From Macrostomum lignano (taxonomy: Eukaryota): a stretch of 28,434 bases of DNA. Each line of letters starts with the position of its first letter. Position 1 is the stretch's first letter. Shown here piece by piece: positions 2,991 through 23,280 of this stretch. The position numbers and the translations under genes were made by a program. The stretch lies in assembly GCA_002269645.1 (NCBI GenBank), contig NIVC01005021.1:1-28434 (forward strand), written 5' to 3'. The notes beneath the pieces are model-generated. The model was not told where the DNA came from. It saw nothing but the letters and a program-made list of their open reading frames with translations, and searched no databases.

Positions 2991-3803
2991 AGTAGTCCTG
3001 GCTTTGAGATGCAAACAAGCAGTAGAAGACGTCTATTTACTGCCGTAATAAAAATTATTTGAAAGAAGTTCTTCACAAGCAGAGCCGAAGGCCTCAGTGC
3101 GGGCCTCTTGGAGACCTCCTGCTGCCATTTTGCCCAAATATTGTGAGCGGCATTTTATAAAAAGTTCACATGAGTAACATTCGGGTAGAGCCATAGCGGT
3201 GTTTTATTCTATACAAACCCATTAGAAACCCTGGTCACTTGGTTCGGAGATGACAGAAATGCCACGATGTCTTTGTGTGGCACCTTTATGGCGCCTCACT
3301 GCTTCCTGGCGCCTCTGATTACTACACCATAATTTTGGCAAATGTCTTCTGAGTAATTTCCCCTGACAATGAAAGTACTTTTTTCCCTCTGCAAAGGTCT
3401 GCTGTGCTATGCGTGGATTTAGACTCGAAACTCTCTTTGACTGACTTCATTCATTTGATCTCATGAAAGACTGGGCTTTCAGGTGCAAATCGCAGTAGCC
3501 GCATCTCTTCCAGCTGCAGGCGGTTGAATTTACCCCAGCAGTTTCTAATTTTAGCAGCTCGCTCCCACGGATACTACTGACCAGCACTGGGCAGCAGTTC
3601 CCGAATGAGGTTGAGAAGCGGGAAAAGTTGATTGGCTCTCAGCAGCAAAAGCCTTCAGCGCTGGGGTTAAAATGGACAGCAGCTCGCTCTGAATGCACTT
3701 GGAGAAATATCGTTTATTGTTTGTTTTGCTTATATCGTTTATTCTTTCCAAGTATCGAAAGTACTTTCTTTAGCACTCATTGCTTTTTGGCTTCATTAGA
3801 GCA

Positions 3804-4833
3804 ATGCGCCGGAATGACCCAGATGAAGAGCTCTTTCAGGCGATTGAAGCAGACGATTTGCAAGCCGTGGAGAACTTCATTGCCAGTGGGAGGAGTGTCG
3901 ACATGATTCTCACTTGGAGAGAAAATGAGTTGACACCGCTGATGTGGGTATGTTTATTGAGCAGAATCGGCATCTTAGTGAGGCTGATTCGAGAGAGCGT
4001 CGATGTTAACAAACAGAACAGGGGTAGATACTCGCCATTGTTTTTTGCATGTCTACTGGGCCATAGTGAGGCTGTCGATTTACTAATCCAAGCACGAGCC
4101 GACGTCAATCTTCAAGAGAAGGTCAAAGATGAGTCACCTCTCTACATTGCATCAATGCAAGGCCACTATGATGTTGTAGATCGACTCCTCAAGGCACAAG
4201 CCGACGTCAATCTTCCACGAAACAATGGCGAGTCACCTCTCTACATTGCATCAGCGCGAGGCCAACATGAGATAGTGGATCTACACCTCAGAGCAGGAGC
4301 CAACGTCAATCTTCAACGAAACAGTGGCCAGTCACCTCTCTACTTTGCATCACAAAATGGCCACCATGAGGTAGTAGATCGACTCCTCATAGCGCGAGCC
4401 GACGTCAGTCTTCAACGAAACACTGGCGAGTCACCTCTCTACGTTGCATCAGCGCAAGGCCACCATGAGGTTGTCGATCGACTCCTCAAAGCAGGAGCCG
4501 ACGTCAATCATCGACTCATCACTGGCTCGTCACCTCTCTACATTGCATCACAAATGGCCACAATGAGGTACTAGATAGGCTCCTCAGAGCACGAGCTGAC
4601 GTCAATGTTCGACTCATCACTGGCGAGTCACCACTCTACACTGCCGCTCAAAACGACCACCATCAGGTGGTTGAGTCGCTTCTCAATGCCTCCGCTCTCG
4701 AAGGCTCTCGAGAGTCACTTCAATCCGCTCTCAATCGTGCCATCGAGTTCAGCAGTGAGCGATCTGCGCAAGTTCTGCACCGTGCGCTGACGGGCGATGA
4801 GCGACCGAATTCGGCCGCAGAAACTGCAGAGAG
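3804..4833 (+). CDS. Ankyrin-repeat cGAS-like (Mab-21) protein, exon 1: about 8 ankyrin repeats plus caps; 1-nt frame break at 4552-4554
   Basis: ATG at 3804 (MRRNDPDEELF...) followed by repeated SPLYIASxxGHxEVVDRLLxAxADVN. At 4552 CAAATGGC lacks one A relative to CAAAATGGC in the sister repeat at about 4352. Restoring it gives ...QNGHNEVLDRLLRARADVNVRLITGESPLYTAAQNDHHQVVESLL...AAETAE and a phase-2 GTGAGC donor at 4834. Confidence 0.85.
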
Positions 4834-5183
4834 GTGAGCGCTGCTGAGTTGCTGCTTGTTATAGGGGTGTGAAACACTGCTGCAGGTTTTGTGGTCGGTG
4901 AAACTTGGTTCTTTATACTTGTGACCAGCATTTTAATCAATCTAGTGTCCCTGCATATCCATTAGTCAGGTGTCTGTATGGACCTTCAGGTACCTGCTAT
5001 TTTGAAGTCGCCATTTCGAACAGTGAGATTTGAAGATCACTCGGCTGCTAGATGATGATGAAATACAAAAATCTGGCGCGTAGGATGTCCTTCATGAGCC
5101 TTTTGAGAATTCAAGCTTGATCAGATTTTCCATGCCACTCTGGGGTATAAATTGATTATGCATCTGATCTCAGCCAATCACAG
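4834..5183 (+). other. Intron 1 (phase 2, GT-AG, 350 bp)
   Basis: AG|GTGAGC donor. CAG at 5181-5183 is the nearby acceptor whose phase joins exon 1 to the NTase frame. Confidence 0.7.
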
Positions 5184-5563
5184 TGAATCACAGCAGCCCC
5201 CACTCCTCCCATCATCCAGAGCCGCTCCCAGCGACAATGACCTCAGCCAGCAGCTGCACTCAGCGCTGACCCGCTCGGGATTCGTGGACTCCAGAGCCGC
5301 CTTGCAGAGCGCCACGGCTGATGTCCTGCAGGATGTTCTGAGGAGAAGACTGAAGTATGTTGGCCTTTTAGTGGTGGGCAGCGTCTCGGAGGGCTGGGGC
5401 AACAGCCTGGTCACTCTGGACGGCAGAACTGGCATCGAGTCCGACATTGACGTGATTTTGCTACTTGTAGGAAGCACGATTCACCCCAGGGATCTGTGCG
5501 AGTGCAAAGGAGTGACGAAAAAAGTGGAATACCGAAACGGACACGTCTTGAGTCCTGGATACG
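5184..5563 (+). CDS. Exon 2: N-terminal part of the Mab-21/cGAS-like nucleotidyltransferase domain
   Basis: LLVVGSVSEGWGNSL...IESDIDV matches the GS...D-h-D motif of the pol-beta-superfamily cGAS/Mab-21 NTases; phase-1 donor TACG|GTGAGA at 5564. Confidence 0.85.
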
Positions 5564-7509
<1,946 letters not shown>

Positions 7510-7959: not shown

Positions 7960-8270
7960 AATTCATGTCTGGCTGCAACTGTCTGACTGGCAAACTGGTA
8001 GACCCAAGTTCATTCCAACTGACGCTTCAGTTCGATGGTGCTGAGTTTGCTCATCTTTATTTCCCAGCACTGCATGCACTGCTCCTCCTAAAGAGTCCCA
8101 TGTAGTCCGAAGCTCATTCCCAAAGAATCTCAAAGTCCTCAGTCAGGGATTCAGGGAGGCAGAGAGGAGTCAAGGAGGCAGAGAGGAGTCAAGGAGGCAG
8201 ATAGGAGTCAGTAGTCACCAGAAAATTTTCCTTCAAAATTCGTGCAGATCAATGCGTAGCTGCTGGAACA
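7960..8270. repeat. Dispersed module, short copy (paralog of about 9900-10790 and partly 16700-16900)
   Basis: Shared GTAGACCC...CCAACTGA(C/T)GCTTCAGTTCGAT...CCCAGCA(C/T)TG, then AAAGAGTCCCATG, GGAGGCAGAGAGGAGTCA repeats and AAAATTTTCC...GCGTAGCTG. Confidence 0.8.
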
Positions 8271-9062: not shown

Positions 9063-9945
9063 GGCTCTCAAATGTCTGGCGGGTAAATGTCTTGCTGGCA
9101 AATGTCTGGCAAATGTCTGGCGAGTAAATGCCTAGCTGGCAAATGTCTGGAAAATGTCTGGTGGGTAAACGCCTGGCTGGAAAATGTCTGGAAAATGTCT
9201 GGCGGGTAAATGCCTGGCTGGCAAATGTCTGGCAAATGCCTGGCGAGTAAATGCCTGGCTGGCAAATGTCTGGCAAATGTCTGGTGGGTAAATGCCTGGC
9301 TGGCAAATGTCTGGCAAATGCCTGGCGAGTAAATGCGTGGCTGGCAAATGTCTGGAAAATGTCTGGCGGGTAAGTGCCTGGCTGGCAAATGTCTGGAAAA
9401 TGCCTGGCGAGTAAATGCCTAGCTGGCAAATGTCTGGAAAATGTCTGGTGGGTAAATGCCTAGCTGGCAAATGTCTGGAAAATGTCTGGTGGGTAAATGC
9501 CTGGCTGGCAAATGTCTGGAAAATGCCTGGCGAGTAAATGCGTGGCTGGCAAATGTCTGGAAAATGTCTGGTGGGTAAATGCCTGGCTGGCAAATGTCTG
9601 GAAAATGTCTGGTGGGTAAATGCCTAGCTGGCAAATGTCTGGCAAATGCCTGGCGAGTAAATGCGTGGCTGGCAAATGTCTGGAAAATGTCTGGTGGGTA
9701 AATGCCTGGCTGGCAAATGTCTGGAAAATGTCTGGTGGGTAAATGCCTGGCTGGCAAATGTCTGGAAAATGTCTGGTGGGTAAATGCCTGGCTGGAAAAT
9801 GTCTGGCAAATGCCTGGCGAGTAAATGCGTGGCTGGCAAATGTCTGGAAAATGTCTGGTGGGTAAATGCCTGGCTGGCAAATGTCTGGAAAATGTCTGGT
9901 GGGTAAATGCCTGGCTGGCAAATGTCTGGCAAATGCCTGGCGGAT
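9063..9945. repeat. Minisatellite on a GGCAAATGTCT core organised as about 41-bp higher-order units
   Basis: Repeats such as GGCAAATGTCTGGAAAATGTCTGGTGGGTAAATGCCTGGCT. Confidence 0.95.
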
Positions 9946-10154
9946 AACTGGGAGTAGACCCAATTTTGTTCCCACTGATGCTTCAGTTCGATCTTTATTG
10001 TGCCAATCTTATTCTGCCGATTTTTATCCCCCAGCATTGTATCCGCTGCTCCTCTGTGCTGAGGCCAATTCCCACCTGCTCACCTCGCAGCTGTGAGAGC
10101 TTTTGATGCAATGATAGAAACAACCTTCTTGGAGGGGAGGCAGAGCTGAAGGAG

Positions 10155-10640: not shown

Positions 10641-10644
10641 CAAA

Positions 10645-10725
10645 GGAGTCAGGGAGGCAGAGAGGAGTCAGGGATGCAGAGAGGAGTCAGGGATGCAGAT
10701 AGGAGTCAGGGAGGCAAAGAGGAAT
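10645..10725. repeat. Short 19-bp tandem repeat (GGGAGGCAGAGAGGAGTCA), related copies at 8155-8210
   Basis: Direct inspection. Confidence 0.8.
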
Positions 10726-13110: not shown

Positions 13111-13715
13111 CATGGTGCTTGACTGGGTGCTGCGGACTGCCCTCTCTTCTGACAACGATAGCTTCCTGCTGCAGCGACGCGTGGGTCGACACCAACCGGA
13201 AAGGCGGCTCAGTGTGCTTGGCTACGCCGATGACCTCGCCCTGCTGTCCTCGACTGTCGAGGGCGGCCAACGCCAGCTGGACCGGCTAATGAGCGTTGCG
13301 GCGAGCGTCGGCCTGGTAGTCAACATACAGAAGACCGTCGTGCTCTGCGTGCCGGACGACATCGAGGTTGCAATTTTCTGCCGAGGCGTCGACGAGCAGG
13401 TGAAAAAGCTTCCGTGCTCTCAGCAGTTTGTCTGGTGCCTGACGTTCGCGAGGACCTGTGACGTCGTAGTGGACTTGCCTGGGCTGCCTTCCGTTCCGCG
13501 AAGGCTGTCCTGCATTCTGAGGCCCTGCCCGACCGCCAGAGGGCGGCGTTGTTACAGGCGGTGATCGAGACCGTTCTGTTGTACCTGTAATGTATAACGC
13601 CGAGACCTGGATGCTGACAGATTCGCTCGAACAGCTGGTCGATGCAGCACACGCGCCGCCTTCAAGGTCGGCTACAAGCGAGTACTGCCCACAGCCGGTG
13701 CAGGAGGTATACACA
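13111..13715 (+). mobile_element. Non-LTR retrotransposon RT, 3' half (YADD to thumb), degenerate
   Basis: VLDWVLRTAL...RLSVLGYADDLALLS...GLVVNIQKTVVL, later VIETVLLY..NAETW. Confidence 0.92.
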
Positions 13716-15929
13716 TTTTTCTCTGGGGCCTTTGAGTTTGTGTTCTCACTTTCGTAAGATAGATGTCTAGCGGTCTAAGGTTCTTACAGCTCTAATCTCT
13801 TCAATCAGGCCGTCAGAGAAAACCGTATAAACTGACGGGATCTCCTAGTATCTAAGCTGAGTTTGACTCTTTCTCGGATATGCTCTGCGTGACAATTAAG
13901 ACAAATAACTGTATTGAAGACTTAGATTTGTGCCAACTGGATAATCCAGAGACCAATTCAAAGGGACCAATTCGAGATCGAAAACTGCGCAAGAAAAAAC
14001 GAAGCGCCGCTCCAGTTTGAGATGGGCGTCTATTTATACCAATTAGAATTTTTGACCTCCCCCGCCGCCGGTGGGGTGTCTTCGCGTGGTTAGCAATGGC
14101 GGGGGGGTTTTAAGCAATAAAAATCCGGGACTCAGTCCCCTAGTTGTACACGAATTTAGTTAGTTCTAGTAGGTTGCTAAGTGTGAGGGTTAGAGTTTAC
14201 TCGGGGTTTCGCAAATCTATGTGTTGAGTTGGATAAAATTTGGGATAGAAAGATTATAGAAAAAGAGCTTAATTTTCCGTCTCTTAACTCTGTCCATTGA
14301 TGATTAAACAGTCCTCTCGGTTGTCAAGCTGTTTGGGGTTGATCTCGCCTTCTTGGGTCGGTTCAGGTTGGGTAGGAATCTGTAGGTGGGCCTCACGTTT
14401 TCTCCCTCAGGGTGCGCCAAAGTCTGCCGCGTGCCGCGTTGTTCTCTAAGTCAGGCCGCTGCTCAGCTTGCTTCTCCCAGCCGGTTTGAGCGCCATTGTG
14501 CCTGCGGCGGGGTGACGCTACTGACTGGAATGAAAAGGGGCTTTATTAGATTCGGCTATTTAAATTCACTTGACAGTTGATTAATTATCTTAAAGCTGCT
14601 TCTGTTTGCCCCTCTAATAGCTATCTAGGGGTTCCATTGTGCTCTTCTGCCTCGCCCTGTAGAGATCTCCAGAAACAATACAAGTAGACTACTGTAAGTA
14701 GTAACATAAAAATGCGAAAAACTTGAATGTTATAAAAATTGCAAATTTTTATACTCTACTTTAAGACAGTGAATACAACGTACCACGAAGCATGAGACAA
14801 GTTGCAACTATGGTGAAATACGTTGCAACTATGGTGAAATATGATGAAATAAGTTGAAATCTGATGAAATATGAGTCGCGCTACTAAGTATATGCCAAAA
14901 TTTCGACTATAAATATAAGCGTAAAATCCGAGCTGAAACCTCAGACTCGGAGCAGCCTCAAAAGATCTTGTGGTTAGTTAGAGCAACTAATCGAGGCTAT
15001 ATCTCTGGGAGAGAAGCGTGTCAATTGAGAAGCGTTGTTCAAGTCTTCGTTTTTTTGATTAATTGAGAGCGATTTTATTGCCGGCCGGCCGTTGTTGATC
15101 CGTTGACTTTACTGAGACTATTGGAGGCCTCCCATTTTCCTAAGGGATTGGATAGGATCTGGGGACCGATTCCGATACCCTTAGAGGATTATTGACGGTT
15201 GATTTGGATTATCCTAGATTAACCGATAGGAGAACACGACTCCAATTCCGTTAGATCTAGAAGAAGACGCCCCCTTTGGAGGACCTCGCGTTAGAATTTG
15301 AGTTCATTAGGGCGCACTGTTGATATTGATTTGGCACTCGAGGAACGTACTGAATCCCGCACTCGAGGAGATATTTCGACGTCGACACTGTTCTGCTCTC
15401 ACTCTCGGCCGACTTTGGACTTCGAAGACTTCAAGAAGATTCCTCCGGAGAAGAAGAAGATTGGTAGAAGCGAACTCTACAAACGCGCGCCACAAGGAAG
15501 AAACAAGGAACGAGCTCGGAGAACCTGCCCGACACAGAAGAGCCCGCCACAGTAAGTGAACACGTTAAATTTGTTCCCAGGCTAAAGTGTCTGGAAGTGG
15601 GAGTTTTCGGGAGACTGATCACCTCCCGAATCAACTCTTCAGCCCTTCACTGCGCCTGGGCATTTCATAAATTTCTATCTATCTTCTAACTTAGGGTTAA
15701 AACTTCAGATTTCTAACTCTTATAGGAGGTGCTGCTGCTGACGCTGCAGGCACCCTACCGGCGGGGGCAGGCGCGCACTCGGCGTTTCGTAGACTGCCTG
15801 CTGGCTGATGCCGGCGCCCCGGACACTGCCGGCGGTGCGGCCTGCGTTCGCGCCCAGGCCTTGAAACGTACCTTGTGACGTTGTCTGCTGACTGACTGAC
15901 AACGTATTTTGTTGTTGTTTTTCCCATGC

Positions 15930-16300
15930 TTTCTGCAGTATGGCCTTAGAGACAGTAGCTGCCACTTTGGGTTTTCGATCTGGTCCAAAGTGTATTTGTT
16001 TAAGATCCTTTGAGAAAAAGACATCTCTTTTCACTGCCCAAGCAACAGCCGGCAGTTCAAGCTCGATCATTGCGTAGCGACGCTCGATTTCCGATACTAA
16101 TCTTGAGCCGGCTTGGATGACTCGCCGCTCTGCTTCTGCTTCAGGGTAAAGGGGAGACAGTTTGGTCTGTAAGCATCCGTGTGCAATGCAGATAAGAGAG
16201 GTAGATAAGAAGTTGATCATAAAAGGAAATCGTAGGGACACTGCTCAGCTCTCTCGTTATCTTTTGGAACGCTTCATCATGCTGCTGACTCCAGACGAAG
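15930..16300 (-). mobile_element. Ty3/Gypsy RNase H remnant, paralogous to about 8650-9050
   Basis: VIQAGSRLVSEIERRYAMIELELPAVAWAVK and LDQIENPK motifs. Confidence 0.85.
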
Positions 16301-16332: not shown

Positions 16333-16722
16333 CTGTCAAATGTCTGTCTGGCAAATGTCTGTCTGGCAAATGTCCGTCTGGCAAATTTCTGTCTGGCAAA
16401 TGTCTGTCTGGCAAATTTCTGTCTGGCAAATTTCTGGCTGGCAAATGTCTGTCTGGCAAATGTCTGTCTGGCAAATGTCTATCTGGCAAATGTCTGGCTG
16501 GCAAATGTCTGTCTGGCAAATGTCTGGCTGGCAAATGTCTGTCTGGCAAATTTCTGTCTGGCAAATGTCTGTCTGGCAAATGTCTGTCTGGCAAATGTCT
16601 GGCTGGCAAATGTCTGGCAGCAAATGTCTGGCTGGCAAATGTCTGGCTGGCAAATGTCTGGCAGCAAATGTCTGGCTGGCAAATGTCTGGCTGGCAAATA
16701 TCTGGCAGCAAATGTCTGGCTG
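16333..16722. repeat. Minisatellite on a GGCAAATGTCT core, mainly 15-bp units (GGCAAATGTCTGTCT / ...GGCT)
   Basis: Direct periodicity; same left and right flanks as the 9063-9945 array. Confidence 0.95.
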
Positions 16723-17589
16723 GTTAACTAGTAGACCCGAGTTCATTCCAACTGACGCTTCAGTTCAATGGTGCTGAGGCTGCTCATCTTTATTCCTCAG
16801 CACTGCATGCGCTGCTCCTCTGTGCCAAGGCAAATCCCCACCTGCTCAACTGCTGGCCCTCAGGCTTCAACTCGCGGCTGTGAGAGCTTTTGATGCAATG
16901 AGTCAATGACGGAAACATCCGGGAAGCCCGAAGTGAAAAAAATCAGTTTTAAAAAAAATAATTAATTATTCGATCCAAGCAGTGACGCATAATTAGGTCA
17001 AAGATAATTTGACCATTTTATAGCGAAATTCTATTTCATAAATATTGAGTATTGCAGCGCAAGTAAGTTTTAGATGGACAGAAAAATGGAAAAAATTTTA
17101 TTACCATATTTATTGTATCATGGCAAGCAGCCTCAAATCTATATCTATAGTTAACTTTGTAATAAACATAAATAGAAGAGTACGCAAACAAAAAAGTCGA
17201 AGTTAAACAGAGTTTCTGAATGAACAAGTTCGAGACAGTTAAAAAATAGTAATCATAGTAAAAAGTCTTCTGGTGAACATCCTTTTAAAAAGATAAAAGC
17301 ATTAAAAAGTGGTTACAAGATTTTTTTATCATTAAAATTAGAAAAAAAGCTATTGTAAAAAACATTTCATATTTGTAACGGTTAAAGTCTGTAATTTTTG
17401 CTAGTTCCTATACGCAAGGGAAAACTAAAGCACTCTGAATTCACTGAGAATCTTGGCATATCCATTCCGTATGTATAGGAATCTAGCAATCAAATTGGTG
17501 TACTTTGCATTTTTATGCAAACTTATCGTGAAACCATCTTGCCACTAGTCTGGGTGCTTCAAGTTGGAGTACTCGAGGGACCCAGTAAA

Positions 17590-19802
17590 TCACACAATGC
17601 TAGCAGCATCGTGATGGCTGACAGCAGCATCGTGATGGCTGAAAGCAGCATCGTGATGGCTGAAAGCAGCATCGTGATGGCTGAAAGCAGCATCGTGATG
17701 GCTGAAAGCAGCATCGTGATGGCTGAAAGCAGCATCGTGATGGCTGAAAGCAGCATCGTGATGGCTGAAAGCAGCATCGTGATGGCTTACAGCAGCATCG
17801 TGATGGCTGACAGCAGCATCGGCAGCATCGTGATGGCTGACAGCAGCATCGGCAGCATCGTGATGGCTGAAAGCAGCATCGTGATGGCTGAAAGCAGCAT
17901 CGTGATGGCTGAAAGCAGCATCGTGATGGCTGAAAGCAGCATCGTGATGGCTGAAAGCAGCATCGTGATGGCTTACAGCAGCATCGTGATGGCTGACAGC
18001 AGCATCGGCAGCATCGTGATGGCTGACAGCAGCATCGGCAGCATCGTGATGGCTGAAAGCAGCATCGTGATGGCTGACAGCAGCATCATGATGGCTGCCA
18101 GTAGCATCGTGATGGCGATTAGTACCATGGTTGGTCGTATTTCCTCGCGTCAATTCCACCTGTGCCAGGTGTCCTCTGATCTCGTATAAGCAGCCGACAC
18201 TGTGAAATCTGTAAAATATTGAGAGCGGTGAGCACAGCATTGACACAAATAGCGTTGCGGATGGGATCCCAGTCTTTACAGAAGCTGTGTCGACGATCAT
18301 TTCGGAGCTGCAAAAAGTGAACATCAGCCACTGTGAGAAGTTTATTAGCATCATGGCGACCGAACACTGCTTTAGCCCGTTGAGATTTGAATTGGCACGG
18401 AATGTCCAGTAGTTGAGCGCCAGAATCAGTACTATTAATTGCAAGCCGCTGTCTGCAATACAAAATACCAGATCTACCAAAGCCGCAATGAATGGAGCCG
18501 AGTTGTTGGCGGATGAACCATCGAAATTAACTTGTGTGGGATCTCCAATGCTCTTAACGTTGTATACAAATAAAAATAGGTTGTAGACTGTGTCGCATAC
18601 TGCAGCAGTGCACAACAGTAAGATGTCGATTCCGTGACTTCTTTGAGGCTGCTGATCGGTGGAGCTCTGATTCTGATGACCAACCCTAAGAAAAAAAACC
18701 AAAGCGATCGTATTGGCAAAGTGCAAGCCCATCAGAACACTGTAGAATAAGGTGTACTGATCCGTCTGGTTAAGAACAAGAAAAATAAGATGGAAACGAT
18801 AGCAGCTGTCGTTGGAATCAGGCCAAACCCCAAGCCGCACCAATAGTGAGCCACAGTGTCAGGTACCACTGCACGATCGTGCGAATTTTGGCTCAGCAGT
18901 TGCTGCAAATCGTCTTCATTATTAACAGGATGCTCGCGCAACAGTTTAGCTAAATGCCCGATGTTGATCCAACAGAACAGGCCGAAAATGGCGCAGAGAA
19001 TGGAGTATTCAGCGCTAAATGGAAAAATATATGGCAGAATTGTGTTTGCCACAGAATTATTGCTTTTTGAATGATTATGATTCTTAAAGTGTTCCAGAAC
19101 TTCAGAGTTAACGCTTGAGAACCAAGACGCCAAGCTGGTGACGATTAGAGGGGCCATTAGAACGGAGAATAAAATAGCAGAAAATTTGTTTGGACTTCGG
19201 TTGCCACACACTGCGAAGAATATGGTTTGGAGTATAGTGAACGCGACTTGTAGGAATGGAATCACAAACTTGTCAAGTGTCCACCAGAAATTTGGAAGCC
19301 AGCAGTCGTTTCTATGGCTTGTGAGCTGGATAATACCGTCAATAAATTTTATGCCCTTTCCAACGACATCGAAAAGGCCTAGCAGAATGCAGACGGTCAG
19401 CAGGAATGTGGAAGGCATGGAAGCGTGCCAGTCCAGCTCAGGAATACAGTCTAAGACCTCATTAGGCGACCAATGTTTGTTTCTGTTGCCTTCATTTGGC
19501 ACTCTTATACTGACACATTTTTTGCAAAGCAACTGATATAACAGCGAGAGCAGAGCCAAGACTATTAGGACTAAACGAATTATTGGCGACACCAAAGGGC
19601 TGTAGTCAGCACAATTCTTGACACTTCTCTCCAGGTTGTTGTCTTCTATGATAAAAGCTAAACTCACTAGTGCTGCAATCGCAGTGCAGACGATTAACAG
19701 GCCGAACTTAACCCAAAATGTGTCTCTGTTGTCGGTGCTGTCGGCCGGTGGCCCCACAGTCCCATTAACCAAGGGAACTGTATCGCCTCCACCTGTAGAC
19801 AT
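17590..19802 (-). CDS. OTOP: Otopetrin-family proton channel, intronless, 12 predicted TM helices, His-rich repeat tail; 1-nt frameshift in the A5 run at 18781-18785
   Basis: TM6 signature PYIFPFSAEYSILCAIFGLFCWINIG (cf. YLxPFxIEYSL...W.NIG) and TM12 signature PLSIFYRFHSVGCLYEI (cf. PLxIFYRFHS..CL.EIW). ORFs 19802-18732 and 18843-17590 join by adding one base in the homopolymer (...IVSILFFLVLNQTDQY...). The symbol is family-level only. Confidence 0.9.
17600..18118 (-). repeat. 21-bp tandem repeat (30-bp variants) within the OTOP frame encoding about 23 HHDAA(F/V)S units
   Basis: + strand unit AGCAGCATCGTGATGGCTGAA; all length variants are multiples of 3. Confidence 0.9.
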
Positions 19803-20029: not shown

Positions 20030-20430
20030 ATTCCAATCTGCAGCATTGACTCACCGAGGCTGCCGCTAACCGCAGTAGGTTGAAAGTTTCCGGTCAGTTT
20101 TTCAGATGACCGCAAAGAACCCCACACTTCGATCAGCTGGCACCGCACTAAATGCACATCTGAAGTTCGCAGCTTCCGGTTGACCGGAAGTTCGATATCC
20201 GTGGTTGGATTTGTTTGGCAAGAGCTGCAGCGTAACAGAAGTGTAGATTGAATCTGATGCGGTCTGTCTTGACACAGGAGCAGCTGCTTTCTGTTTGCTT
20301 CTAGAAGATATTAACTATATGCAGCCACTTTCCGTCCGTAACTTGTGAATATGAAATATGAAATATGTTTTTTTACTTTCTGAAAGTATTTAGCTATCCG
20401 CGAATTTGCGCATAGAGGACAGATTCCTAC
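20030..20430. repeat. Dispersed module upstream of OTOP, paralog of 10830-11790 (empty MITE site)
   Basis: Same blocks as 10830-11790 without the 442-bp element. Confidence 0.85.
20173..20190. promoter_or_regulatory. Inverted pair of ETS-like CCGGAAG cores (CTTCCGGTTGACCGGAAG)
   Basis: Palindrome identical at 11017-11034 although the flanks have diverged; about 370 bp upstream of the OTOP ATG. Confidence 0.3.
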
Positions 20431-21253
20431 TGACAGATCCCCTACTGACAGATCCCCTACTGACAGATCCCCTACTGACAGATCCCCTACTGACAGATCC
20501 CCTACTGACAGATCCCCTACTGACAGATCCCCTACTGACAGATCCCCTACTGACAGATCCGCTACTGACTGATCCCATACTGACAGATCCCCTACTGACA
20601 GATCCCCTACTGACAGATCCCCTACTGACAGATCACCTACTGACAGATCCCCTACTGACAGATCACCTAATGACAGATCCCCTACTGACGGATCCCCTAC
20701 TGACAGATCCCCTACTGACAGATCCCCTACTGACAGATCCCCTACTGACAGATCCCCTACTGACAGATCCCCTACTGACGGATCCCCTACTGACAGATCC
20801 CCTACTGACAGATCACCTAATGACAGATCCCCTACTGACGATCACCTACTGACAGATCCCTACTGACAGATCCCCTACTGACAGATCCCCTACTGACAGA
20901 TCCCCTACTGACAGATCCCCTACTGACGATCCCTACTGACAGATCCCCTACTGACAGATCCCTACTGACAGATCCCCTACTGACAGATCCCCTACTGACA
21001 GATCCCCTACTGACAGATCCCCTACTGACGATCCCCTACTGACAGATCCCCTACTGACAGATCCCCTACTGACAGATCCCCTACTGACAGATCCCCTACT
21101 GACAGATCCCCTACTGACGGATCACCTAATGACAGATCCCCTACTGACAGATCCCTACTGACAGATCCCTACTGACAGATCCTCTACTGACAGACTCGCT
21201 ACTGACAGATACCCTACTGACAGATTCGCTACTGACAGATCCCCTACTGACAG
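20416..21253. repeat. 15-bp minisatellite (ACTGACAGATCCCCT), about 56 units
   Basis: Direct periodicity; abuts the broken end of the LINE. Confidence 0.97.
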
Positions 21254-21257
21254 AGCA

Positions 21258-23000
21258 TCCCGAAGAGGAACGGCGCTAGCGTGTCACTCTGAAGAACTCC
21301 TGATGAAGTGTCGAACAGGTCAGACAGGCCGTCTGCCGTCACCACAGCAGCTCGAGTATCGCAATACAGCGCCATGACAGCGTCGATTAGCTGCTGGGGT
21401 ACCCGGTAGGCTCGAGGGACAAAGGGGAGCGCCGCTCTCAACACCGAGTCAAACGCCTTTCGAAAGTCAACGAAGACAATGACCAGCGTAGACTGTCGGA
21501 TGCGCGCCTCCTCGATGACACGGCGGAGTGCGAGGATCTGTTTCACTGCACCGCGTTGCGGCCGGAATCCGTTCTGCTCGTACCGCAGGTGCGGGTCCAG
21601 CACCGACTGCAGACGATCGAGCAGCAGCCGGTTGAAGAGCTTCGCGGTGCAGGACATCAGCGAGATCCCGCCGTGGTCTTCTTTCCGCGTTGTCCCTGCC
21701 TTCTTCGGGATCGGCACGATGTGCGCGACGGTTTACTCGGTAGGCGCAGGAGCGCCGTCGAGCTCGCGCTTCATGACGCCTGTGACCTGGGAGGCCACAC
21801 AGCGGAGCCGCAGCGCTTCGACCGGGACTTCGTCGGGGTAGAGCGCCTTGCCGCCTGATGTTTTCCGAGCGAACAGCACAACGTCCTCCGTGTTGACTGG
21901 TCTGGTGCAGAAGTCCTCCTCAGCTGGGAGCGGCGTGTCCAGTGGGAGCGCAATGCTGGCGGGCAGCGGCGACGGGAGCGCGTTCACGATGCCGGCGAAG
22001 AAGTTGCGCAATTCATTCCTGCGCTCCTCCGGAGTGTCGCCGGCCAGGTTTAGCACCACGCGCTTTTTGCGCCCCGTCAGAGTCCGGACGGCCGTCCACA
22101 CTGCGCGGCTCTTCACGTCGGGGCCGGCTGCAGTGATGTACCGGACGGCGTCATCGACAGCAGGCTGCTGCCGCTCATCTAGAAGACGCTCAAACGCGTC
22201 TTCAGTGTCGCCCGTAAGTCGCCGGTTTCTGCGGAGTCGCTCAAAGTTGAGCCGCGCCTGCCTGATAGACAGGTCGCTCTGCCAGACAAGCAGCGATTTC
22301 TGCGCTGGCCGCATCAGCGGGACCGTCTGCTCTGCAGCGGCTCTAACGGCGGTGCTGATGTCGGAATAATCCGCCTCGCGCTGGTCTCTAAGCGCGCCGA
22401 CGAAGCCGCCCGCGAATTGACGCTTCACGCGGATGTCCAACGCGGGTAGAGCTGGTCGCGCAGCCGCAAGTCGCAGATCAGGAGTCGGTGGTCTGACCGG
22501 AGAGCCAGCGGAGCCATGGTGTCGCAGTTGGTGACGCGGCGGGACTGCGTTCAGGTCTCCGAGCACTGCCATCGTGTCGCGGTTTGGCACCTCTTCCAGC
22601 TGCCCAGCCAGGAATTCGAAGAAGGCACGATCCTCCTCGGGGTGAGCAGCGGTGGGTGCGTACGCGCAGAACAGCCGGATGCAGCGGGCGCGAAGTCGCA
22701 GGTCGACCCGCATCAGTCGCGGGGACAGCGAGATGCAGTGCACGCTCTGCTGGAGGCGCGATCCGATCAGCACGCTGACACCGCCCCGGCCGCGGTTGTC
22801 TGCCGACGTGTACAGGAGGCTCCAGCCGGCTCCGAGGTAGGTCCTCAGAGTGGAGCCCCGGCTCAGCCACGATAGAGACCTCCTGCAGCGAGACGAGGTC
22901 CAGCTGTAGGTCGTAGGCCAGCTGGACAAGGATGGTGCGACGATGGCTCTGTGAGTTCCCCAGCTGTGCTCATGCAGAGCTCTGACAGGCATTGTAGGTT
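21258..23000 (-). mobile_element. APE-type non-LTR retrotransposon (RTE/RTEX-like), 5' half: endonuclease plus RT up to GVLQSDTLAPFLF; degenerate
   Basis: APE motifs (GRGGVSVLI, CAYAPT, LGDLNA) and RT motifs (GISLMSCTAKLFNRLLLDRL, QNGFRP, FVDFRKAFDSV, GVLQSDTLAPFLF). The clade is inferred. Confidence 0.92.
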
Positions 23001-23280
23001 TCTTAGAAAGATCTGCCATAAGGGCTTGCGGCAATAAGTTTTGTTAACCCCCCAAACTTACATTGTGTAGCACCATGTGAGGCTTATAGCCAGGAATTTT
23101 ACAGACTGAAGTCTCATGAGTTTCACACAACAGGAATAAATATTCATTATATCAAATATATGGCCGATTTCTGTCTGAGGTTTGCAGGAACCCCCCCCCC
23201 CCTCAGAGCCATGAGTGAATAAAATTGAGCAGTCTTGATCACCCAAGTAATTGTGCTCAAACAGCTGCTTCTGATTTTTT

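Follow-up and report, generated by a model that had tools for sequence, protein, structure and literature searches.

A very recent histidine-rich minisatellite in the reading frame of a divergent otopetrin gene predicted in Macrostomum lignano

A stretch of 28,434 nt from Macrostomum lignano (GenBank assembly GCA_002269645.1, contig NIVC01005021.1, positions 1 to 28,434), hereafter the window, carries on its minus strand a predicted gene for an otopetrin (OTOP) proton channel, whose reading frame continues from the last transmembrane segment (TM12) into a tandem array of histidine-rich repeats. All positions given here are those within the window. The question raised by this locus is whether such a repeat is a cytosolic module that has been selected for its chemistry or a minisatellite which leaves the frame open by its nature. 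A first-pass annotation of the sequence proposed the former, namely a tethered proton buffer, pH sensor or metal-binding module, and named a young minisatellite in a dispensable tail as the alternative. In our analysis it is this alternative that fits the data better. We give about an even chance to a recent in-frame coding minisatellite that is tolerated in a dispensable cytosolic tail, and a tolerated or dead-gene minisatellite is more likely than a functional tail.

In the minus-strand frame that contains FYRFHS (18216..18199) and VGCLYEI (18198..18178), the first stop codon is the TGA at 17592..17590 and the frame is unbroken from TM12 to this stop, just as it had been read in the first-pass annotation. 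The motif CATCA[CT]GAT, which encodes HHD, starts exactly 23 times between 18114 and 17616 (minus strand), giving precision to the earlier figure of about 23 units, and all 23 HHD cores are intact. The array is 513 nt in length and consists of 18 units of 21 nt, four units of 30 nt and a terminal partial unit of 15 nt, and the earlier description of the array is accurate. The 30-nt units contain a 9-nt internal duplication (GATGCTGCC), giving HHDAADAAVS in place of HHDAA[F/V]S. The terminal unit is followed by AGC ATT GTG TGA, with the stop codon sitting 9 nt (three codons) beyond the array. Tandem Repeats Finder (TRF) reports the array as a period of 21 nt with 24.8 copies (17602..18116) and, in addition, as a period of 186 nt with 2.4 copies at 98%.

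In evolutionary terms the array is very young: 13 of its units share one sequence, and a comparison of the two 186-nt higher-order blocks gave 0 differences. Its length variants go back to very few events, since besides the basic unit length there are only the internal duplication of 9 nt and the duplication of a 186-nt block. The most divergent units are the first two at the 5' edge, as is expected for a minisatellite that turns over internally. The array is probably length-polymorphic; no part of an assembly is less reliable than the copy number where the units are identical, and since indel-type breaks are also present in the window (see below), the count of 23 should be taken as approximate.

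As to its origin, the array begins about where the proteins of its relatives end, and we infer that it arose in situ from the gene's own terminal codons. The 21 nt directly upstream (18135..18115) match the unit in register at 10 of 21 positions (p about 0.02), and identity further upstream is at chance; the last 21 nt of the linker may, judging by this match, be a decayed repeat unit. The search for a decayed proto-unit in the flanks is not relied on here, the upstream match being marginal and all else at chance; the downstream flank has no similarity to the unit. A dispersed minisatellite family borne by transposable elements was also considered as the source of the HHD unit and was rejected: no second copy was found in the window at up to 3 mismatches (0 expected by chance), and the array, searched as an exact 36-mer, was not found in the metagenome contigs.

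The open frame through the array is not really evidence of coding constraint. With a unit of 21 nt and a variant that adds 9 nt, the frame is kept automatically at any expansion or contraction. Tandem arrays are abundant in the window (27 TRF rows, of which 12 non-redundant arrays make up 22.7% of the 28.4 kb), and among the arrays other than the HHD array, 18 of 60 array/frame pairs are stop-free (13 of 30 where the period is divisible by 3). The first-pass annotation had set the regular units of the HHD array against non-coding arrays with frame-breaking indels. This contrast was overstated, as 3 of the 5 other arrays with a period that is a multiple of 3 have 0% indels in the TRF output. 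Within the HHD array itself, no stops occur in the otopetrin frame or in one plus-strand frame, and the two remaining minus-strand frames contain 1 and 2. The plus-strand open reading frame (ORF) 17515..18189 (224 aa) is open across the entire array and reads (SSIVMAE)n, which illustrates that stop-free repeat units yield long ORFs without any coding function. A control of a similar kind is available elsewhere in the window, where the cGAS-like ORF 5152..5862 reads through a (GTCT)58 array (5578..5811) as (SVCL)n, an array that interrupts the gene. If the array is a tolerated or dead-gene minisatellite, the lesson is one of method: in an array-rich genome, an ORF through a repeat with a multiple-of-3 period is to be expected by chance and should not be read as coding constraint.

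Substitutions among the units lead to the same view. Six events can be recognised, three of them synonymous (CAC>CAT, GTC>GTA and GCT>GCC) and three non-synonymous (TTC/GTC, GCT>ACT and GTC>GGC). Compared with an expectation of 25% synonymous, this 3:3 ratio gives a one-sided binomial p of about 0.17 and so does not depart significantly from neutrality, the events being too few and the array too young to reveal constraint. The frame evidence offered earlier for selection is thus not discriminating, given frame-neutral 21-nt steps, common stop-free arrays and evenly divided substitutions.

Our favoured explanation may be outlined as follows. The ancestral protein would have had a short tail ending in NHGTNR-HHDAAxS-IV before the stop codon, of which the penultimate 21 nt were recently amplified in place. 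Slippage or unequal exchange would then have produced a 23-unit array, with three codons left between it and the original stop. Provided that the gene is intact and expressed, its product would bear a cytosolic tail of roughly 195 residues, Ala-rich and probably helix-prone or disordered, that begins 8 residues past the proton-shuttle His of TM12. Its His/Asp chemistry (titration near pH 6-6.5 and binding of Zn, Ni or Cu) would be a by-product. Because otopetrin C-termini are short, unconserved and outside the 12-TM core, the tail is most likely tolerated and not selected, and its evolution would be neutral.

The array has much in common with coding minisatellites, or in-frame variable number tandem repeats (VNTRs), such as the 48-bp VNTR in the cytosolic loop of the dopamine D4 receptor, the mucin repeats and the repeats of yeast adhesins. 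Shared features are a unit that is a multiple of 3, near-identical units, higher-order blocks, a divergent 5' edge, length changes that are safe for the frame and a position outside the conserved fold. It differs in the unusually high His and Asp content of the encoded peptide, in the peptide's attachment to a proton channel, and in that the array is known here from the assembled sequence alone.

Some observations weigh against the tolerated coding minisatellite. Two of the substitutions introduce stops into the remaining minus-strand frames, with none in that of the otopetrin, which is a weak hint of selection. Likewise, the intact HHD cores in 23 of 23 units are weakly compatible with selection, and even the divergent units of the 5' edge still encode HHD. 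From the opposite side, the frame of the otopetrin is not uninterrupted but has one break in TM7, which in the assembled gene puts the start codon and the tail into different frames; a channel plus tail is intact only if this break is an assembly error.

How unusual such a tail would be is seen from comparison with the family. After the Glu of the TM12 motif, 196 residues follow here, compared to 11-24 residues in seven sequence relatives, of which 0-2 are His. A single arthropod-like metagenome locus, found by profile scan, ends 11 residues past the motif, and the solved chains of vertebrate OTOP1/2/3 end 4-9 residues after the aligned stretch. The comparison with orthologues and paralogues had been named earlier as a check; at the distances covered (no relative above 40% identity) it speaks against conservation, with the His-rich segment present in none of the seven relatives or the metagenome locus. 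The statement of the first-pass annotation that no otopetrin with such a tail is known is borne out: the literature searched held nothing relevant on an otopetrin with a His-rich tail, and a query of TM12 plus tail returned no protein at E <= 1, a weak negative since generic TM words probably crowd the candidates. The seeming 180-residue tail of one relative (P0007) is a duplicated gene model with a true tail of 11 residues, P0001, with its 2420 aa, is a bacterial repeat protein and a spurious hit, and a Pfam GAGA_bind match on the tail (E 0.013, below the cut-off) is low-complexity noise. On the sequences retrieved, the tail is unlike that of any relative and the highly divergent otopetrin is new.

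The identity of the gene as an otopetrin, which the first-pass annotation had recognised, is supported by Pfam and by alignment to the OTOP1/2/3 structures. It is spread over two minus-strand ORFs, 19802..18732 (356 aa) and 18843..17590 (417 aa), which overlap but differ in frame. The first matches PF03189 at E 2.3e-10 (40.4 bits compared with a cut-off of 27.8; profile positions 165-259) and the second at E 4.9e-5 (22.9 bits, which alone is below the 27.8 cut-off; profile positions 252-434 of 434), so the profile runs contiguously across both ORFs (259 then 252). Chains of OTOP1/2/3 in the PDB match at 3e-5 to 1e-2, with the TM11-12 region aligned. OTOP2 residues 492-559 align to the second part of the gene, where His551 of mOTOP2 corresponds to the His of FYRFHS (H534), and FPFSAEYSIL of the first part aligns with YPFNIEYSL of OTOP2/OTOP3. 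In-frame stops lie upstream of the ATG at 19802. The frame-corrected protein consists of 542 residues up to the end of TM12 followed by the 195-residue tail; its hydropathy profile has 12 separate hydrophobic segments, and a full-length alignment to 12-TM relatives (alignment A1) is consistent with the twelve-helix layout.

All 16 invariant columns of alignment A1 are retained in the window protein, including D393, Q455, N488, W492, P526, L527, F530, R532, F533, H534, S535, C538 and E541. The TM6 Glu, TM9 Asp and TM12 His, which structural work has placed at the centre of OTOP proton conduction (PMC11343839), are represented by E265 (in AEYSIL, aligned to NIEYSL of OTOP2/3), D393 and H534, respectively. 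Five of the six residues of the constriction triads, Gln/Asp(Asn)/Tyr in the N-pore and Gln/Asn/Tyr in the C-pore, are kept, the C-pore Gln being placed by alignment A1 alone. The remaining one, the Asp/Asn position of the N-pore, is a Ser: the protein has VTSLASW (residues ~219-225, window ~19130..19150, minus strand) at the place of ATNLAIW (ATNxxxW in characterised OTOPs).

Homologues are distant. An exhaustive phmmer search gave 8 weak hits in total, with no relative above 40% identity in the sample. The nearest proteins found, a hypothetical protein of Macrostomum lignano and OtopLc-like proteins of the nemertean Lineus longissimus, are 20-23% identical over the full-length alignment A1 and 23-40% identical over the matched C-terminal stretches. 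Homologue searches with the tail-less protein and with a profile of alignment A1 returned nothing; these too are weak negatives, as generic TM words probably crowd the candidates. Look-ups of the exact products found no other copy of the gene products. Judged by these alignments, the gene is a genuine, very divergent and lineage-specific metazoan otopetrin. It is apparently intronless. By homology to the experiments on XtOTOP3 (PMC6483595), its C-terminus would be cytosolic, in agreement with the first-pass annotation. With vertebrate OTOP1-3, CeOTOP8 of C. elegans and the OtopL-type proteins of invertebrates, it shares PF03189, the 12 hydrophobic segments, the TM6 Glu-Tyr, the TM9 Asp, the TM12 FYRFHS His, the C-pore Gln/Asn/Tyr as aligned and, by homology, cytosolic termini; it differs from them by its low identity, the apparent lack of introns, the N-pore Ser, the long tail and the frame break as assembled.

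This frame break had been missed in the first-pass annotation. One added T at the candidate site, a run of five T in TM7, restores the junction to TAAIVSILFFLVLNQTDQY, which aligns gap-free to a complete TM helix of the relatives. A short intron at the ORF junction was considered and rejected. The only phase-compatible GT..AG pair (32 nt, 18797..18766) would delete half of TM7, and the relatives align gap-free here; the discontinuity is therefore a 1-nt indel and not an intron. All three cellular genes of the window have exactly one frame break each, between long clean ORFs. In the ankyrin-repeat gene at 3780..4840 (plus strand; Ank_2 at 2.9e-41, 99-nt (33-aa) repeat), the frame switches once, near 4545-4550, where an additional A in TCACAAATGGC would restore the reading YIASQ|NGHNEVLDRLL, a single-base homopolymer deletion like the otopetrin candidate. 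The third gene, a cGAS/Mab21-like nucleotidyltransferase at 5152..7268 (plus strand), has a GS..ESDIDV nucleotidyltransferase motif, a Mab-21_C match at 2.3e-4 and cGAS matches in the PDB at ~6e-5. Its break, near 6530-6552, is not at a homopolymer, and the cGAS alignment is gap-free over the ORF junction at 6541/6552; this gene may be a cGAS-like receptor pseudogene or a mis-assembled gene. Taken together, the ~3 breaks over 5 kb of coding sequence, or about 1 per 1.7 kb, are more readily seen as indel errors left over from long-read assembly than as separate cases of pseudogenisation, and the otopetrin break would accordingly be an assembly error. A region rich in pseudogenes as well as repeats is a less likely alternative. 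At this rate ~0.3 indels are expected in the 513-nt array, and its freedom from indels is therefore unremarkable.

Among the rival explanations, the one that survives best is that the TM7 break is real. The otopetrin would then be a recent pseudogene, dead or a segregating null allele, and the array a minisatellite in non-functional DNA that is stop-free by chance. We regard this as a possibility of clearly lower probability, perhaps half as credible as the tolerated tail or slightly less. The break separates two otherwise intact ORFs, the gene is intronless and lies among retroelement fragments and arrays in a setting typical of retrocopies, the N-pore Asp/Asn position is a Ser, and both neighbouring cellular genes are broken too (the ankyrin gene near 4548 and the cGAS-like gene near 6530-6552, the latter not at a homopolymer). 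However, about 740 stop-free codons with a single lesion, 16 of 16 invariant columns and the intact Glu, Asp and His mean that any death must have been very recent. The otopetrin break (at the candidate T5) and the ankyrin break are single-base deletions at short homopolymers, the usual error of long-read assemblies, and one break per gene in three genes with long clean ORFs is more like an error rate than decay.

The proposal that the tail is a selected module is less likely still. On this view, the (HHDAAxS)n tail in the cytosol would accept or gather protons as a tethered antenna, switch its charge with pH or bind Zn2+ or Cu2+, and its length would tune the effect. As an antenna, the tail would take protons from the TM12 His and pass them to mobile buffers, thereby relieving a desensitising local accumulation; as a switch, it would change the sign of its net charge near pH 6.3, from negative to positive, and so alter gating. 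The repeat part of 174 residues contains A53, H46, D27, S23, F13 and V9, that is 26% His, 30% Ala and 16% Asp, and its net charge, computed with generic pKa values, is about -22 at pH 7.4 and about +8 at pH 6.0, in line with the chemistry ascribed to it in the first-pass annotation. Desensitisation of OTOPs has been explained by protons that accumulate locally around the conserved His of TM12 (PMC11343839), and an intracellular pH of about 6.0 inhibits XtOTOP3 (PMC6483595). The window protein retains this His (H534) together with the TM9 Asp and the TM6 Glu, with its tail beginning 8 residues beyond H534, and of the three minus-strand frames only that of the otopetrin has stayed free of stops in the array. 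A single-sequence AlphaFold2 model of poor quality (predicted template modelling score, pTM, 0.25) renders the tail (17593..18114, minus strand) as a pair of long helices at model residues 229-310 and 316-392, with a predicted local distance difference test (pLDDT) score of about 57-77. The pLDDT of the tail is above that of the TM part in the same low-confidence model, which fits an Ala-rich heptad and is weak evidence. In such a helix, the 7-residue period would produce an Ala stripe flanked by the His pair of each unit, one His per side.

Several points speak against selection of the tail. The array is too young to record selection, the frame is kept automatically with steps of 21 and 9 nt, nothing similar is found in any retrieved relative, and the upstream frame break remains. 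A fixed buffer of about 46 sites per subunit would saturate almost at once and leave the steady state unchanged, so that only an antenna or shuttle could matter. The desensitising His is deep in a narrow cavity (PMC11343839), perhaps beyond the reach of a bulky tail. The link to Zn2+ modulation made by the first-pass annotation does not carry over, as the Zn2+ effects on OTOPs described in PMC6483595 are extracellular and the tail would be cytosolic. A proton-sink or metal-binding role is chemically plausible and, drawn as it is from composition, hypothetical. That the tail is both translated and maintained, as a length-variable proton sink or antenna of ~46 His or a charge-reversing switch that sets the desensitisation rate, a role undescribed for any OTOP, seems to us more doubtful than the general proposal. 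If the tail is made, a dense titratable block would stand at the cytosolic exit of the channel, where structural work places the cause of OTOP desensitisation. It would then offer a natural experiment on the desensitisation model and a case of a channel property tuned by minisatellite length.

Known systems offer partial precedents. The His-rich loops of ZnT and ZIP transporters and the tails of UreE, HypB and SlyD belong to metal-handling proteins; they measure only about 10-40 residues and hold a conserved position in each family. Common to them and to the window tail is a cytosolic, low-complexity segment rich in His and Asp on a transport or handling protein, whereas the window tail has 174 residues in a perfect tandem array and is on a proton channel. 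The compositionally closest known repeat is that of PfHRP2 (AHH/AHHAAD), a metal-binding protein; the likeness is one without homology, and HRP2 is secreted and soluble while the window tail is a putative appendage of a membrane channel. HRP2 has about 34% His, 37% Ala and 10% Asp (PMC13604688) and carries heme (PMC10293821). For the antenna, the precedent is carbonic anhydrase II (CAII), which aids MCT1/4 through a surface cluster of His, Glu and Asp (PMC5986270). The shared concept is that of titratable His and acidic residues beside a proton pathway, which collect or dissipate protons faster than bulk diffusion (PMC5986270). CAII, however, is a folded partner with a role shown by experiment, while the window tail would be a covalently tethered repeat with a hypothetical one.

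The least probable explanation is that the tail is absent from the mature protein, through splicing before the array, or that the length or sequence of the array is an assembly artefact: a donor-like CAG|GTGGAA at 18159 (pattern scan) lies between TM12 and the array, the relatives' proteins end near the same point, and about 3 indel-type breaks per 5 kb of coding sequence occur in a window whose identical-unit arrays are prone to collapse or expansion, but the otopetrin gene shows no introns elsewhere, the stretch from TM12 to the array has no in-frame stop, no candidate exon was identified downstream, and an AATAAA only about 480 nt past the TGA is compatible with a simple unspliced model.

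Table 1. Features of the otopetrin locus and its repeat array (window positions)
Feature	Position	Strand	Basis
Otopetrin coding sequence, part 1 (frame A): ATG 19802, N-terminus, TM1-TM6 and first half of TM7	18786..19802	-	ORF, Pfam, FPFSAEYSIL motif
Candidate site of the 1-nt frame break, T5 run in TM7	18781..18785	-	ORF overlap 18843..18732; placeable only within about 18800..18745
Otopetrin coding sequence, part 2 (frame B): rest of TM7 to TM12, TM9 Asp (HGIDILLL), C-pore Gln/Asn, FYRFHSVGCLYEI	18178..18780	-	Pfam, PDB OTOP2
TM12 motif FYRFHSVGCLYEI	18216..18178	-	contains proton-shuttle His
Linker RGHLAQVELTRGNTTNHGTNR, 21 unique codons, TM12 to array	18115..18177	-	translation
Putative coding minisatellite, 21-nt unit, (HHDAA[F/V]S)n with four HHDAADAAVS variants, 23 HHD units	17602..18114	-	repeat scan and unit count
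Two tandem 186-nt higher-order blocks (30+30+21+5x21 nt)	18051..17866 and 17865..17680	-	TRF and block comparison
Final three unique codons S-I-V, then TGA (17592..17590)	17590..17601	-	translation
Two canonical AATAAA hexamers, 478 and 490 nt past the stop, possible poly(A) signal	17097..17114	-	pattern scan

Other repeats are spread over the window. Three minisatellite families occur at two sites each: a 15-mer, ACTGACAGATCCCCT, at 2336-2724 and 20418-21254; 11/41-mer units of the CTGGCAAATGT type at 9070-9947 and 16333-16723; and a 19-mer, GGAGTCAAGGAGGCAGAGA, that flanks 41/42-mer arrays, at 8147-8210 and 10644-10723. Their distribution suggests that these families are carried by mobile elements, and the HHD array stands outside them. 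Rfam and tRNA scans of the window returned nothing. Remains of retroelements are present as a LINE-like (long interspersed nuclear element) ORF pair at 21244..23034 (minus strand; RVT_1 at 1.8e-14, one internal stop), whose 3' part adjoins the 15-nt array at 20418..21254, and as reverse transcriptase (RT) and RT-RNaseH fragments at 13112..13564 (plus strand) and 15720..16241 (minus strand).

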